Assembly (NCBI GenBank): GCA_965202585.1
Contig: OZ241828.1
Location: 70,432,001-70,496,000 of the forward strand
Direction: 5' to 3'
Source of the DNA: Thalia democratica
Lineage: Eukaryota
Length of the DNA stretch: 64,000 nucleotides
A model generated the notes under the pieces. It ran no database searches and was not told the DNA's origin. It saw nothing but the letters and a program-made list of their open reading frames with translations. This document shows, piece after piece, positions 1,080-57,811 of the stretch (the stretch's first letter is position 1; each line of letters begins with the position of its first letter). The translations under genes were made by a program, and so were the position numbers.

Positions 1080-4000
1080 TAATGTCTAATAACCTACAAA
1101 CAAAATTTTAGGAACCTACAAACTTTGGGTATAAAAAGGTACTAACCAAGATTAAGACCGAATAATTTATACAGTTGTAAGGTACTTTTTAACTTAGTAC
1201 AACTATATTTAATTGCTTTGTTTATAAATGTGTATTGCTAAATTATTTAATTAATAAAAAAGTTTTAAAGAAAAACTAAATTGAAAACAACAGCTTTATG
1301 TTCAAACGATAAATTACCCACATATATTACCTAGCGAAAAAAACTCTAAATATAATATTGATATTAAGTTTTTACCAAATGTCGTTTCTAATAACCATTA
1401 AAAAAAAATTAAACCATGCAAAAACGTTTTTTTCAAACTTTTTAAGAAATTTTTTAAACTATTTTTTTATGATTTAAAATCAAAAAGTTAACTAATGTTT
1501 CAGTTGAACACCAAAAATTTATATAACTATTAAAGGATCTAATCGCATTTGTATAAATTTAATCCTAATGTGAAAAAACTAGCTACTCAAAATATTTAAA
1601 AACTCAATTTTCCTAGATACTTATAAAATCGAGTCTTTGCGTATTGCTGTAAATAATACGAGCTATTTTATCTATTTATGTATATTTTTTCTTTTTACTA
1701 GGAGTTTCAGTGTCTAGATCAGCCGAATTTCTTTTTGTAAATTTTTCTTCTTTATTTATGTTTTCACTGAGTGCTTGAAGTACGAGTTCTCTAGTTGCGT
1801 ACTGAAAAATAAAGAAGATTTTTTATAAAAAAAAAAATGAAACATGAACTATAATATAAAACAAAAACTTTATATAACCTAAAAGTATCTTAATGCTTTA
1901 TAAATACGTTACATAGGAAAATTTAGTGTTTTTAAATTGGTAACTCACTATAGTATCAATTTTCTAGCTAAAAAAATAATAAAAAAGAATACTATAGTTA
2001 TGAATACTAATACTATTGTTTACTAATAACAAGTGGTAAAAGATAATTTTATATTTAGAGATAAACTAAAATGTTAGAAATTAGACATAAAAGTCAGTTT
2101 TTAAAAGTTTTGATATTACTTTTACTGTTTTTTAAATTTCAATATTTGTTACTTTTGAGGAAAACTATATTATTAGAATTAAACTTTTGTTTTTCTTTTT
2201 GATTTCTTCAAGTTGTTACTAGTAATTCGTCACAAAAGAATTCTCGGTAGTTATGTTTCTTGGTAAAACTACTCAATGAAGGGAAAACAAGCAGTTTTAA
2301 ACCTCTAGCTACTTTACATTAATTGTAACTTATTTTATAATAAAATTTTTCGCTATTTTTGAAATCAGACACGTTTTTGTTTTGTCTTAAGGATTTTAAT
2401 AAAAAAATATTATTGTGTTTGCATTAACTTGAATGCATTAAGGTTTGTAACTTTCTGGTACATTCTCTTTTTTAATAAAAAAACAAATCACTTCTTAATA
2501 AACAATCAATAAATTTTGAAACTATCGGTTTAACTTTATGCTAGGTTACATTACATATAAAAGACAAGAGTTAATAGTTCAAAGTAAACTAACTTCGGCA
2601 AAGTTAACGCTAGAAAACTCTAACTTCAATGCATGTTGAAAGTCATAAATTTCCTTCGTTCCTCGCAAATCTTTGATTATTATTTGCTCATCTTCAACAA
2701 TGTTCTTTACGCTCTCATCGTTGTTTAAAACAAGTACATAGATAGTCTGAAAAAAAAAATAATTATTTTTAATAAAAACAAAAAATTCATAACTTTAACA
2801 CTGATTGATCAGTAGAATTAAGGTTAAATTTTTAGTAGAATAGATTTTTGTTTAGAAAATAGCTTAGAAAATTTTTAAATGAATAGTTTTAACTTCTAAG
2901 CTATTTATTTTAAATTTTTCAATAACTAACTTCTTTAGCTTTATATATGTTGTTACGACAATGTAACACTGATTTAACTTGATAATAAAAATTAAGTTTA
3001 AAAATAATTTTAACTATTAGTTTCTTATATGTAAAATTAATTGATTTATATAGTATATTTTAGCCACAGATATCCATTAAATTAACAATATAAAAAAAAC
3101 CTCTGTCATCCAGTTTTCATCAGCTTTCATTTTATTAACGGTGAAATCTTTTTTTAAATTCACTTCATAAGACTGACGCTTTTTTTTTGTTTTCTCTTTG
3201 AGCTTCTTATAAAACTCGGTTAAAGGGGATCCAATGTGAAATGGCATATTTTTTGCTTCCTTTTTTTTTTTTATAAATTCCGTCATTGTAAATTCTGATA
3301 CAATTATTTCTTCATCCTGTTATAAATTAATGCTTTATTTACTTAAAATTAATGTAATATTCACATAATGTAGTTTTAAACTTCTTAAAAAAATGTTTAT
3401 TATTAAAATTAGACTATTTAGAAACAATTTATATTACTATAATTATTTTACTTATTATGTATATATCTATAGTTTAAATCAAAATAAACACAGTTTAAAT
3501 TTACTTTTGTATGTATATCTTTTTTAGGTCTGATTTGAAAATATTTCCAACTTCAGCCATATCTAATTAAAAAGTACTAAAAGTTTCTTAGTTGTATTTA
3601 TTTCTAAATAAGCATGCTGAACTATTAAAGATAAATAGGGTAAAAGTTAGAAGTTTAGGCTTTGATATAATTTTTAAACACATGATGTTTTACAATCTCT
3701 ATATTCAGATCGGGGAATTTATAATAAAATTACAAAACATTCAGTTGCACAAAAGTTAAAGCTTTAAGTTAAAGAAAGTTTATTTTTCCAGCAGTCCATT
3801 CTAACTTTTGTACATTATTAATTATACTTTAACACTATTTGGTAAGTAAAACTTAGCAGTAGATAAAAAAAAATATTTAGGAATACACTTGTGTTAACAC
3901 ATAAAAAAAATTATCTTTTTAAACATAGATTATATTCATTTAAACTGAAAAGTGGGCTTCTATTTAACCAAAAAACATTAAACCTACAAACAGGATATCA

Positions 4001-7000
4001 GTAATCTTTTTTAGTGGAAATATACATTACAATTTATATCTTATGTTGGAATATTTTTCAGTTGTTTTAGTACTTTAAAGTATGTTGGTTTTAAAATTAA
4101 AAAAATTTCATTACAAATACGTTTGATAATAAAAATTTAATATACTATTGTCACTTTGTTAAAATACTGTTTAGTAGGTTCACAAATTATTACTGTTTCT
4201 ACCAAAACATAGTATAAAAATAGATAAAAGTGTGTTTTATAAAGTTAGGCTTCATAATAGTTTTGCTCTTGATACCTTAAACTGTATTCAAGTTGATTGC
4301 GACTCAATAATTGAAAGTTTTTTTTTTAAACCCAGGTCTTAAGACCAACTATGATCAGCGCTTCTTTTTGTTGATTAACAGACAATGATATAACGAAAAT
4401 TAAAACTCTAAATTAAAGCAGCAAAGTAATTACCTTTGAGTCTTGTATTAGTTTATCATACCAGTTCTTCAGTCTGTCATGTCTTGTATGCTTATTATTC
4501 GATGTGTTAAACTTACTTTTTGGTTTTATTCTAAAGCAGTAATCTTTCTCTGAAGCCTGACTCCAAATGACTATGGAATTGTATCTGTTAAAAATATAAA
4601 CAGAAGCTAATTACATCATGCATAGGATTGATGTAGTGGGGATTGATTTGGGAAACAATTATTATCTTTACATGTTAACTTTTAGAAATAATTCAGTTAC
4701 TTAATCATTATAGTTTACTGTACAATATTTTTTTTGTACTTAAAAAATGTATTAAAAACAAACATCATAACTACTGACCCAGCATTTTTGTAATACATCA
4801 TAAAACTCTTTATGATTTCGTAGAACAAAGTAGTTCTTTCAGTCGAAGTTTTTTCTACACTTGATCCTCTGTAATATTTCACCGAATCCAAAAATGAAAG
4901 ATAAATTGAGTTTTTTATGTTTTTATGTCCTTCGTTGTACAGCTATAAGTATAAAGTGCGTGTTAAGAAAATTCAAACAAAATTACGTTATGAAGTTAAA
5001 AAAAATTTAATCTAAAAAACAGTTTTAAGATTTTGACCATTTGATGCTAGCTTTGTTTAATTATCTAAAATATCGTTTATAAAAAGTATTATGAGAACTT
5101 TTGCTTTAATTTATTTTATTCTTAATTCGATAAAATAAAACATACCAAGACATTTTGAATACTAAAAAAATCTAATAGTTTTTATTAATATTATAATTGC
5201 TAAATTAATCTAAAAAAATCTATGGTGTTTGTCATGTGCTAGTTAACTTATGATTGTTTATACAAAAATATATTCTTAAATTTTTACGAGCTAACAACCT
5301 CTGCTTGGAAAATAAAAAAGCATATTTCTTTTTCATCAATTTTCTGGAAAACTGCAAATACCAGCCTGGTAAAGTGAATGTCTGCTTTTTCATAACCAAG
5401 GCTGCAATATACAACAGTTTTAGTCTAAATAGGTACTATTATGTTTTAAATACTGGTTTAATATAATACTATAAGCTTTTTTGTTAAAGTATTTAATATT
5501 AAAAGAGCAAAAATTAGATTGCAGTAGATTTTGTTTTAAGGATTTACTATCAACCATAAAAGCTATCTTTTCAAAATTTTTGATAATAAAAAATAAAACA
5601 TTTTGGATATAGAAATTAAGTTAATCTTCAAAAAAAAAAAAATTGAAAAAAAAACTTAAAAAAACTATTAGATTAACTATTATTTAAAAAGCCATAAAAG
5701 TTAGTTAAGTATTGGTAATATTTTTACACGTCTAGAATTAATAATATTTTGATTTTTGGTATAACAAATATAGAATGAAAAAATTACTGTTTCATTAGGT
5801 GTTTGCAGCCTAAGTCGTATTTTATCTTTTCTTTGTTTAGAATTCTTACAAAAAGTTGCCCTTCGACTCCATTTTCTTTTTGTAATTCATTTATTTTCCT
5901 TTCTATGGTCTTGGTCAATTCATTTTGTCGTAAATTTTCAGCTGATGGAGCCGTTTCTTTTGAACATTCTTTACAAACAAATCTAAACAAATTTAATTAA
6001 ATGCAAACATCTTGTAGTTTAGTTTAAGAAGTTTTGAGGTTTATAAAATTAATTAAAAAATATAGACTTAAAGGATTGATAACAGTTCCTAGCTAGATAA
6101 TCTTAAATTGTTATTTGTGAACGCCCTATGATTTAGTACAGAGGACTACAAACTGCTGTCTATAAAGGGTTAAGAAGCAACCCCTGAGTAATTTTTGAAG
6201 GTCACACTAGATTTTTTCAGATCTTAAACATATGTAAAAAACAGTCTCAGGTGTAATTTACGAGATTTTTAAAACTTAGGTACTTTTAGCAGCTGTACTA
6301 AATACTATGAAGCAAAAAGTGAAAAATACGTCATAGTTGTAATTTACAAGAAGGTGATTAAAACCGCAACTGTGGTCAGCTAACACCAGATGTCTGCCGA
6401 CTTCTAATACTGATATCACAAAGAAACTTCATTAGAATTTCTGACTACTAATGTAGTTGAGTATTTTTTTCAAATTTGAGCTTTAATAATATTGTAAAAG
6501 TACCATTTCAAAAACTTTAAAGTTCAAATGTTTATTGTTCTAAACTTTCTATTATAAACTAATGCAATTTAAATTTATCAAATAAATTTAATGTTTAGAA
6601 AAAAAGAATATAAATGAACATTTACTTTTCATTTTCCGTGTACCCACAAATAGTGTGAAATTGTTTTTTGCATTGAGTGCATTTTTTAGTAGGCACTTCA
6701 ATTAGCTTGTTGTTTACTTTTTCCATAGGTTCAGCTTTTTTACTATCTTTACTTTTTGAACTGTTTATATAGTTAAAAAGATCAGTTGTGTGTACTTTAA
6801 AACTTCTAAGCTCTTAAATATTTACCAAACCTTTACTTTTAGTTTATAATTTAATGGATTTTTAAATTTAATCTTAAAATTTGGTATGAACTAATTCATT
6901 AACAAATATTTAGATATCTTTTTTTTATGTCTTTTTAAAATAACCTAGTCTAACCTTCTTCTTTTAATACTTAAAGCCGTCTTTTTTCCACATTCTTTAC

Positions 7001-8700
7001 AATATGCTTTATTTTTGAGTTCGTAATAACTTTCGTCGACATTAATGCCTCCCTTGCAGTTTTTGTTGCTACATTTCAGCCAGCTTTTGGAGTAAAACAA
7101 CTGTAATAAAAAAAATTAAAGAATTAAACCAAATGGTTCGTAACTAATAAGTATTTTTTGTGAAAAGACGACAAATCAATTGTCATTAAAAAAGACAAGT
7201 TTATTTATACTTTAAAAATTTGTAAATGTATAGAGCAAAACACTTACTCACTAAACTAAAAATTATAGTTTGTATAATAAACAGTCTTACTTTCTTTTTG
7301 CAGCAGAAGTTAACTGTTTCTTCAGATGACATTTAAGTATTTTTTAACCTTAAAATTTGTTATAATAACAATATTTTAAGATAGCTATATGGCTGGTTAA
7401 AATCAAGGATATTTATTTTTTTAGTTAAAATTGTTAAGCTGTCTTTTTGTCATATTAAGTTAAAACTATTGATAAATAAAGAAATATGTTTTATTTATCT
7501 TAAAAAGAGTTGATAAAAGTTAGATAACTTTTTTAAATGACTATATAAAAAATTAACAATGAATAAAAACTAAGAATGATAGTACATTAATACTTTCTGT
7601 TAATAGTATTTTACAAAATGATTTCGTTTTAAAGTAAAAAAATTCAAAAAAAAAAGTTAATTGGAAATCATAAATGAATTTATAATAGTTAAGCTTAAAA
7701 AAAACATTATTATTCTATTACAGCAATTGAATTGAAAAATTATAAACTGTTTTGATAATTTAGGTAAAAAAACTTCGTTAGATTTTGTCTATTCTTATTA
7801 CAAGAAATTTTTAATACTAAAAATAAGCGATTTAAATTACTGCTCTTAGTTTAACCCGATCGTCGCCTTAGGCGTTTATGATAAAAATAATATGCCCTGA
7901 AGCGACTTTTATAAAAAAACTTACATATTATTATATACACACTGTATAAAACTATTTCAAGGATTATCCAGCTTAGTAAAAATGTTGTTTTATAAAATAA
8001 AAAAAAACATTAAAAAATTAAGCCATTTGATAAAAATAATAGTCAATTTTTTTTAAATTAAATTAATCAATTAACAAGAAATACTCTACTAGTCTAATTG
8101 TTTAAATAATAAGAGTTTTGAGGTTTTAAGAAGTTTTTATTTATAAAACATACCTAGGCTCAAGATATTTAAAATAATCTTTTTGAGAAACAAAGGCTTT
8201 ACTTATACTATTTCTAATTTTAATGTAAAAAACGTGTTTTTTTAATACATATGCAACGAAACAATAATACAAAGGTAATATAAAAGTAATTGTATTATTT
8301 ATCTATAAATAAACTATATTTTCTTTTTAGTTTAAAACTTTTAACAAATGTATAATAAAACATTACTCTTAAAGTTAACACTTAATATATTAGGTAAACT
8401 TTTTATACTTTATTAACGAAATCAACTTGTACTGTAAAATAGACTAACTTGTACTTTAATGAATAATTGTGTTAAATCTAAAAACATCTATTGATTTGGT
8501 CATATGATAATTCTATTTCTTAAAGATATTCAAGTGACCATATCTCTAAAAGTAATATTTAAGTCTTATATATATCTACCAGTATTTTTTTATTATGATT
8601 GCAAATTTTTAAAATATTTTTAATAATTTTTTAGATTATTAAAATCTATAAAAATTAACTATATTATGAAACTAATATAACCATAAAAAAGTAGCTTTTA
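1080..8700. repeat. Segmental duplication unit A (paralogous to about 51670-58500, same orientation)
   Basis: Exons, many intron blocks, the 3' flank (gaacctacaaa...gaccga...ttgtaagg) and the 5' flank (tcgtcgccttagg...tatgccctgaag; taatgaataattgtg) align by eye with the second block. Boundaries are approximate. Confidence 0.85.
1676..7332 (-). CDS. Minimal p300/CBP-like (KAT11) lysine acetyltransferase, copy A: RING-PHD-HAT only, 10 exons, about 476 aa
   Basis: Hand-spliced GT-AG exons with matching phases: 7332-7291, 7100-6955, 6760-6626, 5982-5788, 5401-5299, 4942-4779, 4584-4434, 3316-3101, 2746-2594, 1801-1676 (1431 nt, no internal stop). Motifs are collinear with the p300 core: FCCKKK~YCCGRK; KCTQCKKQFHTIC~ECTECGRKMHQIC; FVCKEC~FVCDGC; FQKIDEKEICFF~FEEIDGVDLCFF; IYLSFLDSVKYY~VYISYLDSVHFF; IWSQ~IWAC; RLKNWYDKLI~RLQEWYKKML; MPFHIG~LPYFEG; LEFSSVNFAEYAT~LEFSSLRRAQWST. 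Confidence 0.9.
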
Positions 8701-47699: not shown

Positions 47700-48200
47700 A
47701 CAAGTCCCTACTAATAATTTCATTTAAATACTCAGGATCACTATGTTGGTATCTAAAGCAGGCGACATCAGCAAACAATCTCTTATTTATTTCATTAGAG
47801 AAAAAACATCATTAATGTACACAATAAACATAAAAGGACCTAAACAAGAACTTTTTTGCATTCTAAAATTCAGAATTTCACGCTCAGACACAGCATTACT
47901 TATGAAAGTTGATAGGCTTCTATTTATTAAATAGTTTTTTAGTTAATTTAATATTGAATCTTTTATATTATAACTTTTAAGTTTTGATAATGAAATTTTA
48001 TTATTAACTGTGTTAAATGCTTTAGTTAAATCCAAAAATACAAAGCAATTTATCAATTTTTTCTCACCAGCCTCAATTAACTCATCAACAATCTGAATCA
48101 CAGTTAGTTCGGTTGTACTATTTTTTCTAAACCCATATTGTTTCTCTTGTACTACCTCATTTAACAAAAAGATTTTTTTTCAATCTCTCACAAACTAAAA
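47700..48200 (-). mobile_element. CR1/L2-type LINE reverse transcriptase fragment (decayed; probably extends further on both sides)
   Basis: QYGFRKNSTTELTVIQIVDELI...VFLDLTKAFNTVN..SLSKLKSYNI, then SCLGPFMFIVYINDV. Confidence 0.8.
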
Positions 48201-51200: not shown

Positions 51201-52243
51201 CAGTTCGTGTTTAATTGCGTTTTAAACGTTCCTGTAAACAATTCAACTACCCATATAGAAAATTTTTTTTTTTTCGGCAAACATTTGTATTTTAAGCCAT
51301 AAATAGTATAAAAGCAACGCAATAAATTTTCCGACAGTTGAAAATATTAAAAATTAATTTTCAAAAGAGATTAGGTGAAACATCCTTTCATTGTTTATTT
51401 TTGGCTAGAGTATAAATAAAAGGAAAGCTCAAACTAAATTGAAGTAAAAATTTTGTAAATGAGTACTTAACAACTTTTAAGAATATTAAAACAGTATTTT
51501 AAAGCTTAATTACTTTTTTTCGGAAAATAATGAATTTAAAAAGTGAACTCTGAATTAATGTAAACTAAACATTATAATTTCTAATGCAAAAATAGTTTTC
51601 TATAGCTAGTTGTTTATGCAAACTTTTAAACAGAAAGTTATTTCTAGATATGTAAATCTTATGCAAACTGTATTTTGTTCTTTTCTTGTTTTATAGAACC
51701 TACAAAACTTGTATTTTAAAAGGTTCTAATCAAAATTGAGACCGATGAATTTGTACAATTGTAAGGTGTTTTGTAATTTAGTACTTAAACATGTTTAATT
51801 AATTTGTATATTAGTGTTTAGTTTTAAATCTTTAATAAGAAAACAATTATAATGTAATGTAGTTTTTAAATTACAACGATAAACAATCAATACATATTAT
51901 TTAGCGCTTACAATTCTAAATTAATCTTTATAGTAAGTTCTTACAAAATTTCATACATAATAACCGCTTAATAAAAAAAAACCATGCAACAATGGTTTTG
52001 TTAATCTCCTTAAGTAATATTTTAAACACATAATATTTTTTAGAATCTAAAATCAAAAATTTAACTAATGTTTATACAGAACACCATAAATTTATATAGT
52101 TTGTTAAAGATCCAATAATATTTATATAAATTTATTCTAATGTGAAAAAACTAGCTACTCAGAGTATTTTTAAAAATAAAGTTTTCTAAAGTTCCACACA
52201 ACTGAGATTTGCTAAAACTCATACGAAGTTTTACTATCTATTT

Positions 52244-55200
52244 CTAAGTTTTTTTCTTTTTCCTTGGAGTTTCAGTGTCTAGAATGGCCGAATTTCTTTT
52301 TGTAAGTTTGTTTTCTTCATTTTTGTTTGCACTGAGTGCTTGAAGTACGAGTTCTCTAGTTGCGTACTGAAAATAAAGAAGATATTTTATAAAAATAAGA
52401 ATAAAACGTAAGTTACACTATAAAACAAATTTCTTATAATTTTAAAGTATATTAGTGCTCTATAAATAAGTTACATAGCATTAGGAATATCAAATTTTTG
52501 AAAATTGGTAGCTTACAATATCATCAAGTTTCAAATAACAAAAAAAAAATATTATTGTTATGAATACTAACATCAATGATCACTAAAAATAATAGTTAAA
52601 GATGATAATTGATTATAGATCAAGTAAAATGTAAAAACAAAAACATAAAAATCGTTGTTTACAAGTCTTAATATTACATATACTGTTCTTGATTTTTAAC
52701 ACTTTTTACTTTTTAGGATAACTAAAATACTAGAGCCAAACTATTTTTTTCAAGTGGTTAGATGTAGTTTGTCATAAAACAATTGTTTGTAGTAATGTTT
52801 CATGTTAAAACTACTCAAAAAATGAAAAAAAATGTTAAAAAGACATCTATTTGTTTTACATTAATTACTATTTATTTTATTAACTTTTTTTAAGTTCAAG
52901 AACTTAAATATAGACACGTTATTATTTTGTAACCATAGATTATAATTTTTTGTTACATTTAATATAAAACAAAAACAAGTGTTAATAGTTCAAAATAAAC
53001 TAACTTCGGCAAACGTAAAGGTAGAAAATTCTAACTTCGATTCATGTTGAAAGTCATAAATTTCTGTCGTTCCTCGCAATCCTTCGATTATTACTTGCTC
53101 GTCTTCAACAGTATTTTTTACGCTGTCTTCGTTGTTCAAAACAAGTACATAGATATTCTGAAAAGTAAAAACTAAATATTTTTAATGAAAACAAAAGGTT
53201 CATAACTTTAAAACTGATTGATCAGTATAACTATGGTTAATTTTAGTAGAATAGATATTTGTTTTGAAATTGCTTAAATAATTATTAGATGGATAGTTTC
53301 TAACTTCTAAGCTTTTTATATTAAGTTTTTCAATAACTATCTTCTTTAGCGTTAATTATGTTGTTACGACAATGTAACACTGATTTAACTTGAAAATAAT
53401 AACTAAGTGCAAAAATTATATACACTGTACCTTTTTTATCAAAATAAAAAAATTTTAAAGTACAACTTATCCACGTAATAGATATCCCTTTTATTACCAA
53501 TATAAAAAACATAAAAACAAACCTCGGACATCCAGTCATCATTAGCTTTCATTTTAGCATGGGTAAAATCTTTTTTTAAATTCACTTTATAAATCTCACT
53601 CCTTTCTTCTGTTTTTCTTTTTAGTTCTTCATAAAACTTGATTAAAGGGGATCCAATGTGAAAAGGCATATCTTTTACTTCCATGTCTTCTACAAAATCT
53701 GTCATTTTAGATTGTGACACAATTATTTTTTCGTCCTGTTATACGTTAATGATTTTTTTTTACTTAAATTTTATGTAATATTTACATAATACAGTTTTAA
53801 ATTCTTTAAAAAATTTATCAATAAAATTACAATAACTATAAACAATTTGTTTTACTAAAGTTATTCCACTTATTAAGTGTATTTTTTATAGCTTTAAATG
53901 ATAAAAAACTGTACCCAAGTAGTGTGCGACTCGACGATCAAAAAGTTTTCTAACAATAAGATTCTAAGACCAACTATTTTGAGCACTTCTTTTTGTCGTC
54001 TAACACACAATAACATGTTAAAAATTAAAATTATAGATAAAATTACCTTTGAATCTTTTATTAGTTTATCATACCAGTCCTTCAGTCTATCATGTCTTGT
54101 TTGTTTATTAGTGTTAAACTTACTATGTGGCTTTATTCTAAAGCAGTAATCTTTCTCTGAAGTCTGACTCCAAATGACTATGGAATTGTATCTGTAAAAA
54201 GTATGAACAAAAGCTAGTTACGTCATGCATACAATTGTTGTAGTGGGAATTGATTCGGGAAATAATTATTATCTTTATAGGTAAACTTTTAGAAAACTTT
54301 TATGTTTTAGTAAATGGTATACTGTACGATATTTATTTAAAGTTTATATTCGAAAAATGTATTAAGCACAAGTATCATAACTACTAACCCATTATTCTTG
54401 TAGTATCTCATAAAACTCTTTATAATTTCGTGGAACAAAGTAGTTCTTTCAGTAGATGTTTTTTCTACATTTGATCCTCTGTAATATTTCACCGAATCCA
54501 AAAATGAAAGATAAATTGAGTTTTTTATGTTTTTAAGTCCTTCGTTGTACAGCTAAAAGTATAAGTGTGTGTTAAGAAATTTCAAAGAAAGTTACTTTAT
54601 GGAGTTAAACAAAACTTTGAATGTTAATCTTAAAAACAGCTTTAAGTTTTTGAACATTTGATATTAGCTTTATTTCATACACTAAAATGTCATTCAAATA
54701 AAATATGATGTAAATTTATGCATTATTTTAACTTTAGTTTTTATTCGATAGAATAAAGCATATCAAGAAGTTTTTGGTTTAAACATATGAAAATGTAAAT
54801 TTATAGTTTTTTTATGTGCTGATTAACTTATGATTGTTTATACAAAAATATATTCTTAAAGTATAATAAGCTAACCTCTGCTTGGAAAATAAAAAAGCAT
54901 ATTTCTGTTTCATCAATTTTCTGGAAAACTGCAAATACCAGCCTGGTAAAGTGAATGTCTGCTTTTTCATAACCAAGGCTGCAATATACAACAAATTTAG
55001 TCTAAGTAGGTACTATTGTTTTAAAAACTGGTTAATATAATACGATAAACTTTTGTGTCAAAGTATTTAAGATTTAAAAAGCAAAAATTATAATGCAGTA
55101 GTTTCTTTTTAAACATTTCCTAGCAACTGTAAAAGTTTTACTTTTAATATTGTAAATAATAAAAAAGAAAATATTTTGAATTTAGAATTTTGATTTATAT

Positions 55201-56857
55201 TCCAAAAAAATAAATTGAAAGAAAATAATTAGGAAATCTACAACACTAATTTCTTTAAAAACATTTTGTAAGTTAGTTAACTACGGCAATATTTATACTG
55301 GTCTAGATTAATAATATTATTATCTTTGGTATATCTAATTTTAATGAAAAATTTACTGTTTCATTAGGTGTTTGCAGCCTAAGTCGTATTTAATCTTTTC
55401 TTTGTTTAGAATTCTTACAAACAGTTGCCCTTTTACTCCATTTTCTTTTTGTAATTTATTTATTTTACTTTCTATGGTCATAGTCAATTCATTTTGTTGC
55501 AACTTCTCAGCAGATGGAGAGGTTTCTTTTGAACATTCTTTGCAAACAAATCTAAACGAAGTTAATTAAATGCACACATCTTGTAGTTCATTCAAATACA
55601 TTTTGAGGTTTATAAAATTAACTGCAAAATATAGACTTAAAGTATTGACTAGTGAACATTTGTAAATTAAATTACAATAAGTTGATAGTTTTGAATGCCC
55701 TATGATATACAGAATACTGCGAACTGCTGTTTATAGTGGATTAAGAAGCAACATCTACTAACTTTTGAAGAACTGGGTTTTTTTTGGATCTACAACACAA
55801 GTAGAATACAGTCTCGGGTGTAATTTACGGGATTTTCGGGAAAATACATCATAGTAAAAATTTACAAGAAGGTGATTAAAACCACAACTGTGGTCAGCTA
55901 ACATTAGATGCCAATCGACCCCTAATACTATATTATGATGAAGCTTATCTAAAATTTACAATTACTAATTGAGTTATGTATCTTAACAAAATTAAGCATT
56001 TATAATATAATAAAAGTACGATTTTAAAAACTTTAAAGTTTAAATGTTTATTGCTCAAAACTTATACAAAAACTATAAAAATAAAATCATTTTACAACTA
56101 AAGTTAATGTTTAGAAATAAAGTAATAAGAATAGAAATTTACTTCTTATTTTCTGTATATCCACAAACAATGTGAAATTGTTTTTTGCATTGAGTGCAAT
56201 TTTTGATAGGCACTTCAATTTGCTTGTTGTTTACTTTTTCCTGAACTTCAACTTTTTTACTATCGTCACTTTTTGAACTGTTTATGTGGTTAAAAAGATC
56301 AGTTATGTGTACTTTGAAATTTCTAGGAAATGTTCTTTGATACTTACTAAAAATTTATTTTAATTAATAATTGAGTCTTAAAGTTTTAAATGAACTAACT
56401 GGTTTACAAATAGTTAGATAACTTTTGATGTCTTTTAAAAATAAGTAAATTGGTCTAACCTTCTTCTTTTAATACTTAAAGACGTCATTTTTCTACATTC
56501 TACGCAAAAGATATTTGGATTTTTTGCTTTATCTTTGATTTCGTAATATTTGGCGTCAACATCAATGCCTTTCTTGCAGTTTTTGTTGCTGCATTTTAGC
56601 CAGCTTTTGGAATACAACAACTGTAATAAATAGTTTATAGAAATAAACTGAATGTTTTGTAACTATTAAGTATGTTTGTCAAAAAAAATAAACCAATTAT
56701 CACTAACATAGACATGTTTTCTACAAAGCCTGTAAACTTTAAAAATTATAAATGAATAGAGTAAAAACTTACTTACTAAATTAAAAGTTCTAAAATAAAT
56801 AATAAACAATCTTACTTTCTTTTTGCAGCAAAAGTGAACTGTATCTTCAGATGACAT
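52244..56857 (-). CDS. Minimal p300/CBP-like (KAT11) lysine acetyltransferase, copy B: 10 exons, about 477 aa
   Basis: Same exon phases as copy A: 56857-56816, 56620-56460, 56277-56143, 55551-55357, 54978-54876, 54552-54389, 54191-54047, 53735-53523, 53157-53005, 52366-52244 (1434 nt, no internal stop). All indels against A are multiples of 3 nt. FLDSV, ERT, IWSQ and WYDKL are retained. Confidence 0.9.
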
Positions 56858-57811
56858 TTAAATAGCTTCTAACCTTAAAATAATTTTATTAGTAAGTGAA
56901 ATATTTTGAAATAGTAGACGGCCCGCTAAAGTACATATATTTAAATTTATTTCAGTTAAAATTATTAATCCGTCCAATGTTATTCTAAATTGTATATTAA
57001 TAAATTTATTAAGAAGTATGTTTAGTTATATAAAAATATATAATTTCAAATTGATAAACTTTAAACAAACATTTAAAATGAGTTTATAAAAATATGCCAT
57101 AAATAAAAACTAGAAACAACAGTACATAAACATTTTCTGTTCATAGTTGTTTACAAAAGTATTATGTTTAAAGGTAACAAAATTTGAAAAAACATAATTG
57201 AAAAACAGTACAAAAATTTATAATAGTCATGTTTTTTGTAGAAAAATTTTTGTAGAACTTTAATGTTTTTTAAAGCAATTGAAAAATTATAAATATTTTG
57301 ATACTTTAGCTGTAAAAAACTAAGTTAGGCTTTGTCTAATTTTAGTAGAAGAATTTTTAATACTAAAAATAAACTAATAACAGCTTAAATTACAGTTCTT
57401 AGTTTAATCAAATCGTCGCCTTAGGCTAAAAAAATTATAATTATGCCCTGAAGTTAATATCATATTCACATTTTATGCAACTATTTCACAGATTATCACA
57501 CATAGTAAAAAACTAATTAATAAATTTAAAACCACAAAAAAGTTAATCCATTTGATAAAAATTAAAGCAACTTTTTAAAGATTAAATTATATCTAAACGC
57601 TCTCCACTGCTTGAATACCTAGATTTTTAAGGATTAAAAAGTTTATACTTGAAAATCATACTTAGGTTCAAGATATTTGATTTTTTTAAGTTTCCAAATA
57701 CATTTTTTAAATACAAAGGTTTTACTTAAATCATATTTTATTTTTACCTAAAAAATTATCTTAGTAAAGCATATGCAACAAGTACTAATATACAAGTTAA
57801 ATGAAAGTTAT

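Follow-up and report, generated by a model that had tools for sequence, protein, structure and literature searches.

A second intact mini-p300 gene in Thalia democratica, probably part of a lineage-specific set of truncated CBP/p300 paralogs undergoing copy gain and loss

The genome of the pelagic tunicate Thalia democratica carries, within a stretch of 64,000 nucleotides of contig OZ241828.1 (hereafter the window; C4:70432001-70496000), two truncated genes related to the acetyltransferases CBP and p300, here termed copy A and copy B, and further full-length copies (C, D and F) lie elsewhere on the same chromosome. To our knowledge, CBP/p300 is normally a single, highly conserved gene in invertebrates, and the locus raises the question of whether copy B is a maintained gene, how many relatives it has and what its product may do. 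As set out below, we consider copy B likely to belong, as an intact gene, to a lineage-specific, gain-and-loss family of truncated CBP/p300 paralogs. This family does not consist of two genes, but of several live and dead copies subject to birth-and-death turnover.

In a model that was built by hand and checked by script, copy B is an intact 10-exon gene on the minus strand of the window (52244-56857), with a coding sequence of 1503 nt (500 codons followed by TAG). All nine introns are of the GT..AG type, and the 18 splice sites as well as the ATG are intact. An in-frame stop lies immediately 5' of this ATG; start codon, preceding stop and exon-1 donor (AAA/GTAAGA) are conserved in all five full-length copies. 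The encoded protein has 59 kDa and is basic (pI 9.2, 14.8% lysine). The intact frame and canonical splice sites bear out the view of the first-pass annotation that B is no decaying fragment of CBP, and a processed retrocopy is excluded by the nine GT-AG introns together with the 500-codon open frame. The parts of the gene, in window coordinates, are as follows (HAT, histone acetyltransferase domain).

Exon 1: 56816..56857, minus strand, ATG and 14 codons.
Exon 2: 56460..56620, minus strand, probable CBP/p300-type RING with cysteines at residues 10, 11, 24, 29, 53 and 56.
Exon 3: 56143..56346, minus strand, linker and second half of the PHD finger (C118, C121, H126, C129).
Exon 4: 55357..55551, minus strand, end of the PHD finger (C139, C142) and start of the HAT; 8.2% divergence from A.
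Exon 5: 54876..54978, minus strand, N-terminal part of the HAT.
Exon 6: 54389..54552, minus strand, HAT core with the YLSFLDSV motif (D254/S255) and R271/T272.
Exon 7: 54047..54191, minus strand, HAT core with W297, Y305, R325 and W329/Y330.
Exon 8: 53523..53735, minus strand, lysine-rich and fast-evolving; 21% divergence from A.
Exon 9: 53005..53157, minus strand, probable C-terminal HAT subdomain, placed by colinear order, length and a KLEFS motif recognised by eye.
Exon 10: 52244..52366, minus strand, C-terminal tail with a KKKK stretch resembling a nuclear localisation signal, and TAG.
AATAAA signal: 52131..52136, minus strand, 107 nt past the stop codon.
Duplicated unit common to A, B, C and F: 51696..57811, minus strand, the gene with ~950 bp upstream and ~550 bp downstream.

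Exon 3 of copy B has a second in-frame acceptor at 56322, which is the sole usable one in A, C and F; either acceptor keeps the frame of B, yielding 500 or 492 residues. The window contains no runs of N, and its GC content ranges from 21 to 35% in 2-kb bins, with ~24% near copy B. These local values are consistent with the GC content of the T. democratica genome as a whole (25.3%), the lowest among tunicates (PMC13746493). A fragment of an RVT_1 reverse transcriptase is found on the minus strand ~4 kb downstream of B (47790-48179).

The earlier proposal of a second intact mini-p300 paralog about 50 kb from the first is confirmed by comparison with the other copy in the window.

Paralog A: 1676..7332, minus strand, 10 exons, 491 codons, intact provided that exon 3 begins at 6805.

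The start codons of A and B lie 49.5 kb apart on one contig, with ~44 kb of unrelated genes between them, and comparison of the window with itself revealed a single duplicated block in the same orientation (A 1112-8290 versus B 51696-57811), with a nucleotide identity of 72-80% across exons, introns and flanks. Projection of the B exons onto A showed intron positions and phases to be identical, as had been proposed. The indel sizes given by the first-pass annotation are exact: relative to A, copy B has 15 nt more in exon 2 (161 versus 146 nt; exon 2 of C and F is short by the same amount), 6 nt less in exon 7 (145 versus 151) and 3 nt less in each of exons 8 (213 versus 216) and 10 (123 versus 126, stop codon included). 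Its statement that all exon indels keep the frame needs a restriction, however. At the exon-3 acceptor used in B, copy A has GG in place of AG, and a 5-nt deletion just inside the exon causes a frameshift at this boundary; the frame is restored through an AG located 24 nt further in (A 6805, corresponding to B 56322), with the loss of eight codons. The statement is thus true only if A uses this downstream acceptor. The synonymous changes quoted previously are both present (GGA TAT ACA in B for GGG TAC ACG in A at the end of exon 3, and ATT for ATA in exon 4), and the introns have indeed diverged in sequence and length, intron 7, for example, being 1117 nt long in A but 311 nt in B. Within intron 7 of B (53906-54035) lies a ~125-bp dispersed repeat with at least 25 copies in the genome; next to this repeat, A carries an extra ~800 bp (window 3489-4279), and the same is seen in C and F.

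The CBP/p300 relationship of the encoded protein is evident from a phmmer search of the PDB, in which B matched 21 p300/CBP chains (E 5.5e-19 to 7.9e-15) over query residues 99-393. The aligned region comprises the second half of the PHD finger and the counterparts of the CBP motifs YISYLDS, CLRTAVYHEI, HIWACPP, DDYIF and KRLQEWY. Residues D254, S255, R271, T272, W297, Y305, R325, W329 and Y330 of B align with the matching CBP/p300 motifs; we take them to be equivalent to D1399, S1400, R1410, T1411, W1436, Y1446, R1462, W1466 and Y1467 of p300. By this alignment, the equivalent of every acetyl-CoA-binding and catalytic residue of p300 is present in B. The N-terminal module matches weakly: Pfam RING_CBP-p300 (PF06001) matches B with E 0.032 and 15 bits, below the cut-off of 25, and the six cysteines within the first 56 residues follow the CBP RING spacing in an alignment that itself scores 0 bits. 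The protein starts six residues before these RING-like cysteines, so that no bromodomain precedes the core. TAZ1, KIX, bromodomain, ZZ and TAZ2 were not found in B with Pfam, and no Pfam domain was detected in the minus-strand open frames up to 4.8 kb upstream, which rules out a hidden upstream exon encoding a bromodomain.

At the other end, the PDB alignments of B stop at residue 385-393, and the remaining 107 residues were not aligned by any tool; exons 8 and 9, when searched singly, matched no p300 chain. The length of this segment is close to that of the 96 unaligned C-terminal residues of a loop-deleted p300 HAT chain (6v8b_A). Exon 8 presumably occupies the position of the autoinhibitory/autoacetylation loop of p300.

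A search of the 802-Mb genome with the B protein, followed by projection of the copy models, shows that the family extends well beyond the window: chromosome C4 carries three intact copies (A, B and D), the dead copies C and F, and fragments.

Copy D: C4:70.6526-70.6570 Mb, minus strand, intact, 502 codons, GC donor in intron 6; exons 97% identical to those of B.
Copy C: C4:70.4154-70.4208 Mb, minus strand, dead; exon 4 is frameshifted by +2 and exon 5 interrupted by an in-frame TAA.
Copy F: C4:67.334-67.340 Mb, strand opposite to A and B, dead; the frame shifts by -1 in exon 4 and by +1 in exon 7.
Partial copy, exons 5-7: C4:70.543 Mb, minus strand.
Exon-8 fragments: C4:70.604 Mb (minus strand) and 67.373 Mb.
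Two dead copies: C4:31.07-31.08 Mb.

Within the cluster at C4:70.415-70.657 Mb, copies C, A and B, the partial copy, the exon-8 fragment and D follow each other on the minus strand, spaced by 18, 50, 58, 61 and 49 kb. A second mini-p300 subfamily of three copies is located on C8 (59.61, 59.67 and 59.71 Mb; loci L038-L040), with ~40% amino acid identity to B, intron positions and phases that are shared where compared, and the catalytic Trp and Tyr retained. The C8 copies are likewise ~50 kb apart, and this common spacing hints that tandem duplication may have involved units of ~50-60 kb. The first-pass annotation had spoken of both copies being kept as a small lineage-specific family and had called for a genome search for more; this search did find additional members on C4 and C8, and the lineage-specific family stands, not as a pair, but as a birth-and-death family that includes A, B, D, the dead copies C and F, and the C8 subfamily.

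The shared features divide the full-length C4 copies into two groups: A, C and F have all lost the exon-3 acceptor of B, have a short exon 2 and carry the extra ~800 bp in intron 7, and B and D have the long forms in common. Exon 10 is mosaic, in that B groups with C and D with F, contrary to the tree of the rest of the gene; between B and D, exon 10 is 12% different and intron 9 only 2.5%. This pattern points to gene conversion or, possibly, to differing 3' breakpoints of the duplications.

Purifying selection on A and B had been suggested from the sequence, and pairwise estimates of non-synonymous (dN) and synonymous (dS) divergence agree with this in part. For A and B, the NG86 method gave dN 0.101, dS 0.223 and dN/dS 0.45 (bootstrap 95% interval 0.33-0.68; Fisher p 1.5e-5), YN00 and maximum likelihood gave 0.53, and LWL85 gave 0.71. 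When the substitution spectrum was taken from the gene's own introns, in which case the neutral synonymous share is 0.234 and not 0.184, the A-B ratio rose to 0.66 (p 0.01); for A and D, the corresponding values were 0.38 uncorrected and 0.56 corrected (p 7e-4). Along the gene, the A-B ratio was 0.43 in exons 1-3, 0.23 in exons 4-7, the N-terminal part of the HAT (p 3e-5; 0.34 after spectrum correction; 0.16 between A and D), and 0.65 and 0.68 in exon 8 and exons 9-10, respectively, the latter two not being significant.

Comparison with the introns leads to a similar picture. The Jukes-Cantor distance between A and B is 0.27 in introns versus 0.126 in exons; exons 4-7 diverge by 1-8%, with flanking introns at 17-25%, and in exon 5 only 1 of 103 nt differs between introns that are 21% different, which argues for selection and not for a gene-conversion tract. 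Across 3040 aligned nt of intron, 63 indel events were counted, only 22% being multiples of 3; in coding sequence, by comparison, the indels measure 15, 6 and 3 nt only, besides the 5-nt deletion in a stretch that has turned intronic in the A clade. Given that ~7% of neutral substitutions create stops, the A-B intron divergence predicts ~29 nonsense changes, and none is present; ~24 frameshifts would be expected, with none seen except the 5-nt deletion, and this indel expectation is probably too high, dead copies C and F carrying just 1-3 exon indels each.

Assigned to branches by parsimony, the ratio of non-synonymous to synonymous changes (pN/pS) was 0.45 on the internal branch separating B and D from A, C and F (p 2e-4), 0.32 on the D branch, 0.40 on A, 0.60 on C and 0.45 on F; gene conversion in exon 10 and other mosaic patches may have misassigned some changes to branches. 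Selection on the family is thus real but moderate; its signal stems mainly from the old internal branch and is concentrated in the HAT core. Purifying selection stands for the A-B comparison, whereas the terminal branch of B taken alone does not differ significantly from neutrality.

Evidence for the gene was also found outside the genome assembly. Short-read contigs from two sequencing runs (X1 and X2) exactly match B-specific intron sequence, and a third run (X3), labelled as a different organism, contains pieces 92-97% like B. A search with exon 8 recovered two marine-metagenome proteins from ENA, both of which read through a donor into the intron and must therefore derive from genomic DNA. 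A marine-metagenome contig of 2125 nt (L055) aligns colinearly with B over the stretch from intron 4 to intron 8 (84% identity), with D equally close; as its best match in this genome is also 84%, it belongs to another taxon or to a very divergent population. Its exons 5-8 are open and its splice sites canonical, and relative to B its exons are 6-10% and its introns 12-19% different, with dN/dS 0.42 (p 0.0095), or 0.62 after spectrum correction (p 0.085). From these distances, the A/B split (intron distance 0.27) seems to predate that between B/D and L055 (~0.17).

Another environmental contig (L057:1-698, ENA ERZ17083582) encodes a HAT fragment of the C8 type that is intron-free across the exon 5/6 and 6/7 junctions and abuts sequence 71-77% identical to a dispersed repeat of this genome. 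It may represent a processed copy or else the cDNA of a related organism, and in both cases the gene of this relative was spliced at the junctions that the B model predicts. Among 1.84 billion representative proteins, exon 6 retrieved mostly low-complexity noise and one useful match, a protein of 124 residues (P0008); the exon-3 protein search gave no candidate.

A number of observations weigh against copy B being a maintained member of a CBP/p300-derived family. No RNA run was found that contains the B stretch; the contigs aligned to B are of DNA type and show no exon-exon joints (those listed have sides of 20-39 nt and are not B introns), and the exon 5/6 and 6/7 junction patterns had no match in the JGI metagenome contigs. 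Full-length B found no match among the predicted proteins of 275-875 residues in a collection of 5.8 billion. Pfam HAT_KAT11 (PF08214) matched neither the whole protein (E up to 0.1) nor its single exons (E up to 10), and in a genome scan with this model the C4 copies were not among the best 60 matches; given the PDB alignments, we read the missed threshold as probably reflecting high divergence and not absent homology. The C-terminal 107 residues are placed in the HAT fold by their colinear order and length only, an assignment that stays provisional. Moreover, the sister copies C and F are dead, which shows that members of this family do die, and the terminal branch of B carries 6 synonymous and 21 non-synonymous changes (pN/pS 0.80, not significant; 1.07 with the intron spectrum, not different from 1). 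Substitution ratios alone therefore reveal no constraint on the recent lineage of B, which could be a young, unexpressed copy that drifts neutrally, a pseudogene in waiting whose signal of selection stems from its ancestors or from D. We consider this unlikely. From the B intron branch (~0.033 in a three-taxon calculation), ~3.6 nonsense changes (probability of none ~0.03) and ~4 frameshifting indels would be expected, and none is seen. The splice sites and start codon have remained intact, and outside exon 10, where 6 synonymous and 14 non-synonymous changes remain (pN/pS 0.53-0.71), none of the 14 B-specific replacements affects a catalytic or zinc-binding residue. The exon-to-intron rate ratio of B (0.56) is no worse than that of D (0.84), and gene conversion, by blurring the polarisation of changes, can artificially lengthen the B branch. 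Open frame, intact signals and benign replacements thus argue for constraint on this branch.

If the protein is made, it could still be non-enzymatic, a decoy or dominant negative that draws substrates, partners or acetyl-CoA away from full-length CBP. B is devoid of any recruitment module and retains a probable RING, a module that in p300 inhibits the HAT, and C. elegans cbp-2 and cbp-3 affect promoters without a HAT domain (PMC10320766). Yet the strongest constraint falls on the catalytic N-terminal part of the HAT (dN/dS 0.16-0.34), all catalytic residues are kept, and the catalytic Trp and Tyr persist even in the C8 subfamily at ~40% identity, a pattern expected of an enzyme, which makes a decoy role rather improbable. 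We give very little credence to the copies being cargo of mobile elements, or captured fragments, and not host genes. Copies are numerous, some of them on the same chromosome at distances of 3 Mb and 39 Mb, nests of Penelope-like elements and the reverse-transcriptase fragment lie nearby, and L057 joins an intron-free HAT fragment to repeat-like sequence. Against this, all full-length copies have nine introns and those in the 240-kb cluster a single orientation, the ends of the unit show no convincing terminal repeats (the best inverted pair has 50 nt at 70% complementarity in AT-rich DNA), and no transposase or reverse-transcriptase frame lies inside the unit. In addition, the exon-junction patterns are absent from this genome (0 matches for exon 5/6), which therefore holds no processed copies of the C4 subfamily. 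Even less probable is an assembly or haplotype artefact, which the 5% difference between B and D introns might suggest, since alleles of a marine animal with high heterozygosity could differ by this much. However, B and D lie 168 kb apart with the partial copy and a fragment between them, their exon 10 differs by 12%, and the X1 and X2 contigs match B exactly. That A and B are not haplotypes follows from their introns, which are 23% different and of unequal lengths, and from their location on one contig with 44 kb of unrelated genes in between; a haplotype pair is excluded by this intron divergence.

Taken together, we favour the interpretation that copy B is an intact, probably maintained member of the family. 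The copies, which retain their introns, have the same orientation and cluster on one chromosome, arose by DNA-level segmental duplication of a unit of ~6-7 kb including ~1 kb of upstream DNA. Later, some copies died and parts were probably swapped by gene conversion, and selection has preserved the reading frame, above all in the N-terminal part of the HAT. The predicted protein combines a RING-like zinc module, the second half of a PHD finger, the HAT domain and a KKKK tail. Judging from this layout, B is likely to be a nuclear lysine acetyltransferase, acting without acetyl-lysine reading or docking of transcription factors. For its targeting and control, the HAT of CBP presumably depends on the bromodomain, RING and PHD next to it as well as on the docking of transcription factors; for want of reader and docking modules, targeting and regulation of B would have to differ from those of CBP.

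One may go further and suppose, as a doubtful but attractive conjecture, that in this pelagic tunicate the enzyme core of CBP has given rise to a multigene family of nuclear acetyltransferases that stand alone, without reader or docking modules, with fast turnover and a fast-evolving loop, serving lineage-specific roles (for example in the budding life cycle, or in conflict with genetic parasites or viruses) and not housekeeping. If true, a chordate with several intact genes for the enzyme core only would offer a natural experiment on this core acting alone, and a central chromatin regulator would have entered rapid, family-style evolution. The interest of the family hinges on a demonstration of expression and activity; the main value of following copy B has been to expose the size and dynamics of the family.

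The same type of domain also occurs elsewhere in the genome. The scan with Pfam HAT_KAT11 detected at least 60 further loci outside the C4 family. About 35 of them lie within C5:10.5-11.73 Mb and form two sub-types, with copies 92-97% nucleotide-identical; this array is a massive amplification of a p300-type domain. The C5 loci are nearer to CBP than the C4 family is and have no relation to it at the DNA level. Other sites are C5:16.60-16.94, C6:28.805, C1:19.735 and C8:5.287-5.327 Mb, and C12:74-75 kb (these side loci, together with those on C5, are labelled L046-L053). On C2 (60737455-60738030; L041), an intron-free open frame of at least 327 residues encodes a very divergent HAT, 24% identical to B, in which the equivalent of W1436 is not conserved.

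How, then, does copy B relate to known CBP/p300 systems? The only KIX match of the genome is on C10; HAT_KAT11 exons lie on the same strand at a distance of 7-9 kb, and this locus (C10:31828033-31836997) is the probable canonical CBP gene. Two of three comparable intron positions appear to coincide between this gene and the C4 family in a rough mapping through the coordinates of the Pfam HAT model. Like canonical animal CBP/p300, B has a RING-like module, the second half of the PHD finger and the HAT in the same order, with conserved catalytic and acetyl-CoA residues. Unlike them, it has 500 versus ~2000+ residues, with no TAZ1, KIX, bromodomain, ZZ, TAZ2 or IBiD, is only ~30% identical to the human HAT domain and, at the family level, is multi-copy with rapid turnover. 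HAT folds of the p300 type that work without a bromodomain are known from plant HACs and from fungal Rtt109, a stand-alone HAT. Plant HACs retain TAZ and ZZ, and Rtt109 is not known to resemble p300 in sequence and requires histone chaperones; neither is a lineage-specific duplicate in an animal.

In the literature, we found no paper on a p300-like expansion in salps or tunicates and no described gene family that keeps the enzyme core alone. The closest parallels are clustered, lineage-specific partial duplicates in C. elegans, where cbp-2 and cbp-3, partial copies of cbp-1 located within 160 kb, were long considered pseudogenes, yet may be functional (PMC10320766). These worm genes keep an N-terminal zinc finger or KIX and are devoid of the HAT, whereas the copies described here keep the complementary part, the enzyme core. 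A lineage-specific expansion of CBP with diverged functions is also known from another invertebrate, the planarian with its Smed-cbp-1 to -5, whose paralogs, unlike the C4 family, retain most CBP domains (bioRxiv 10.1101/2020.09.08.287045). According to the same study, non-vertebrate chordates have one CBP homologue, a statement that the genome of T. democratica contradicts.

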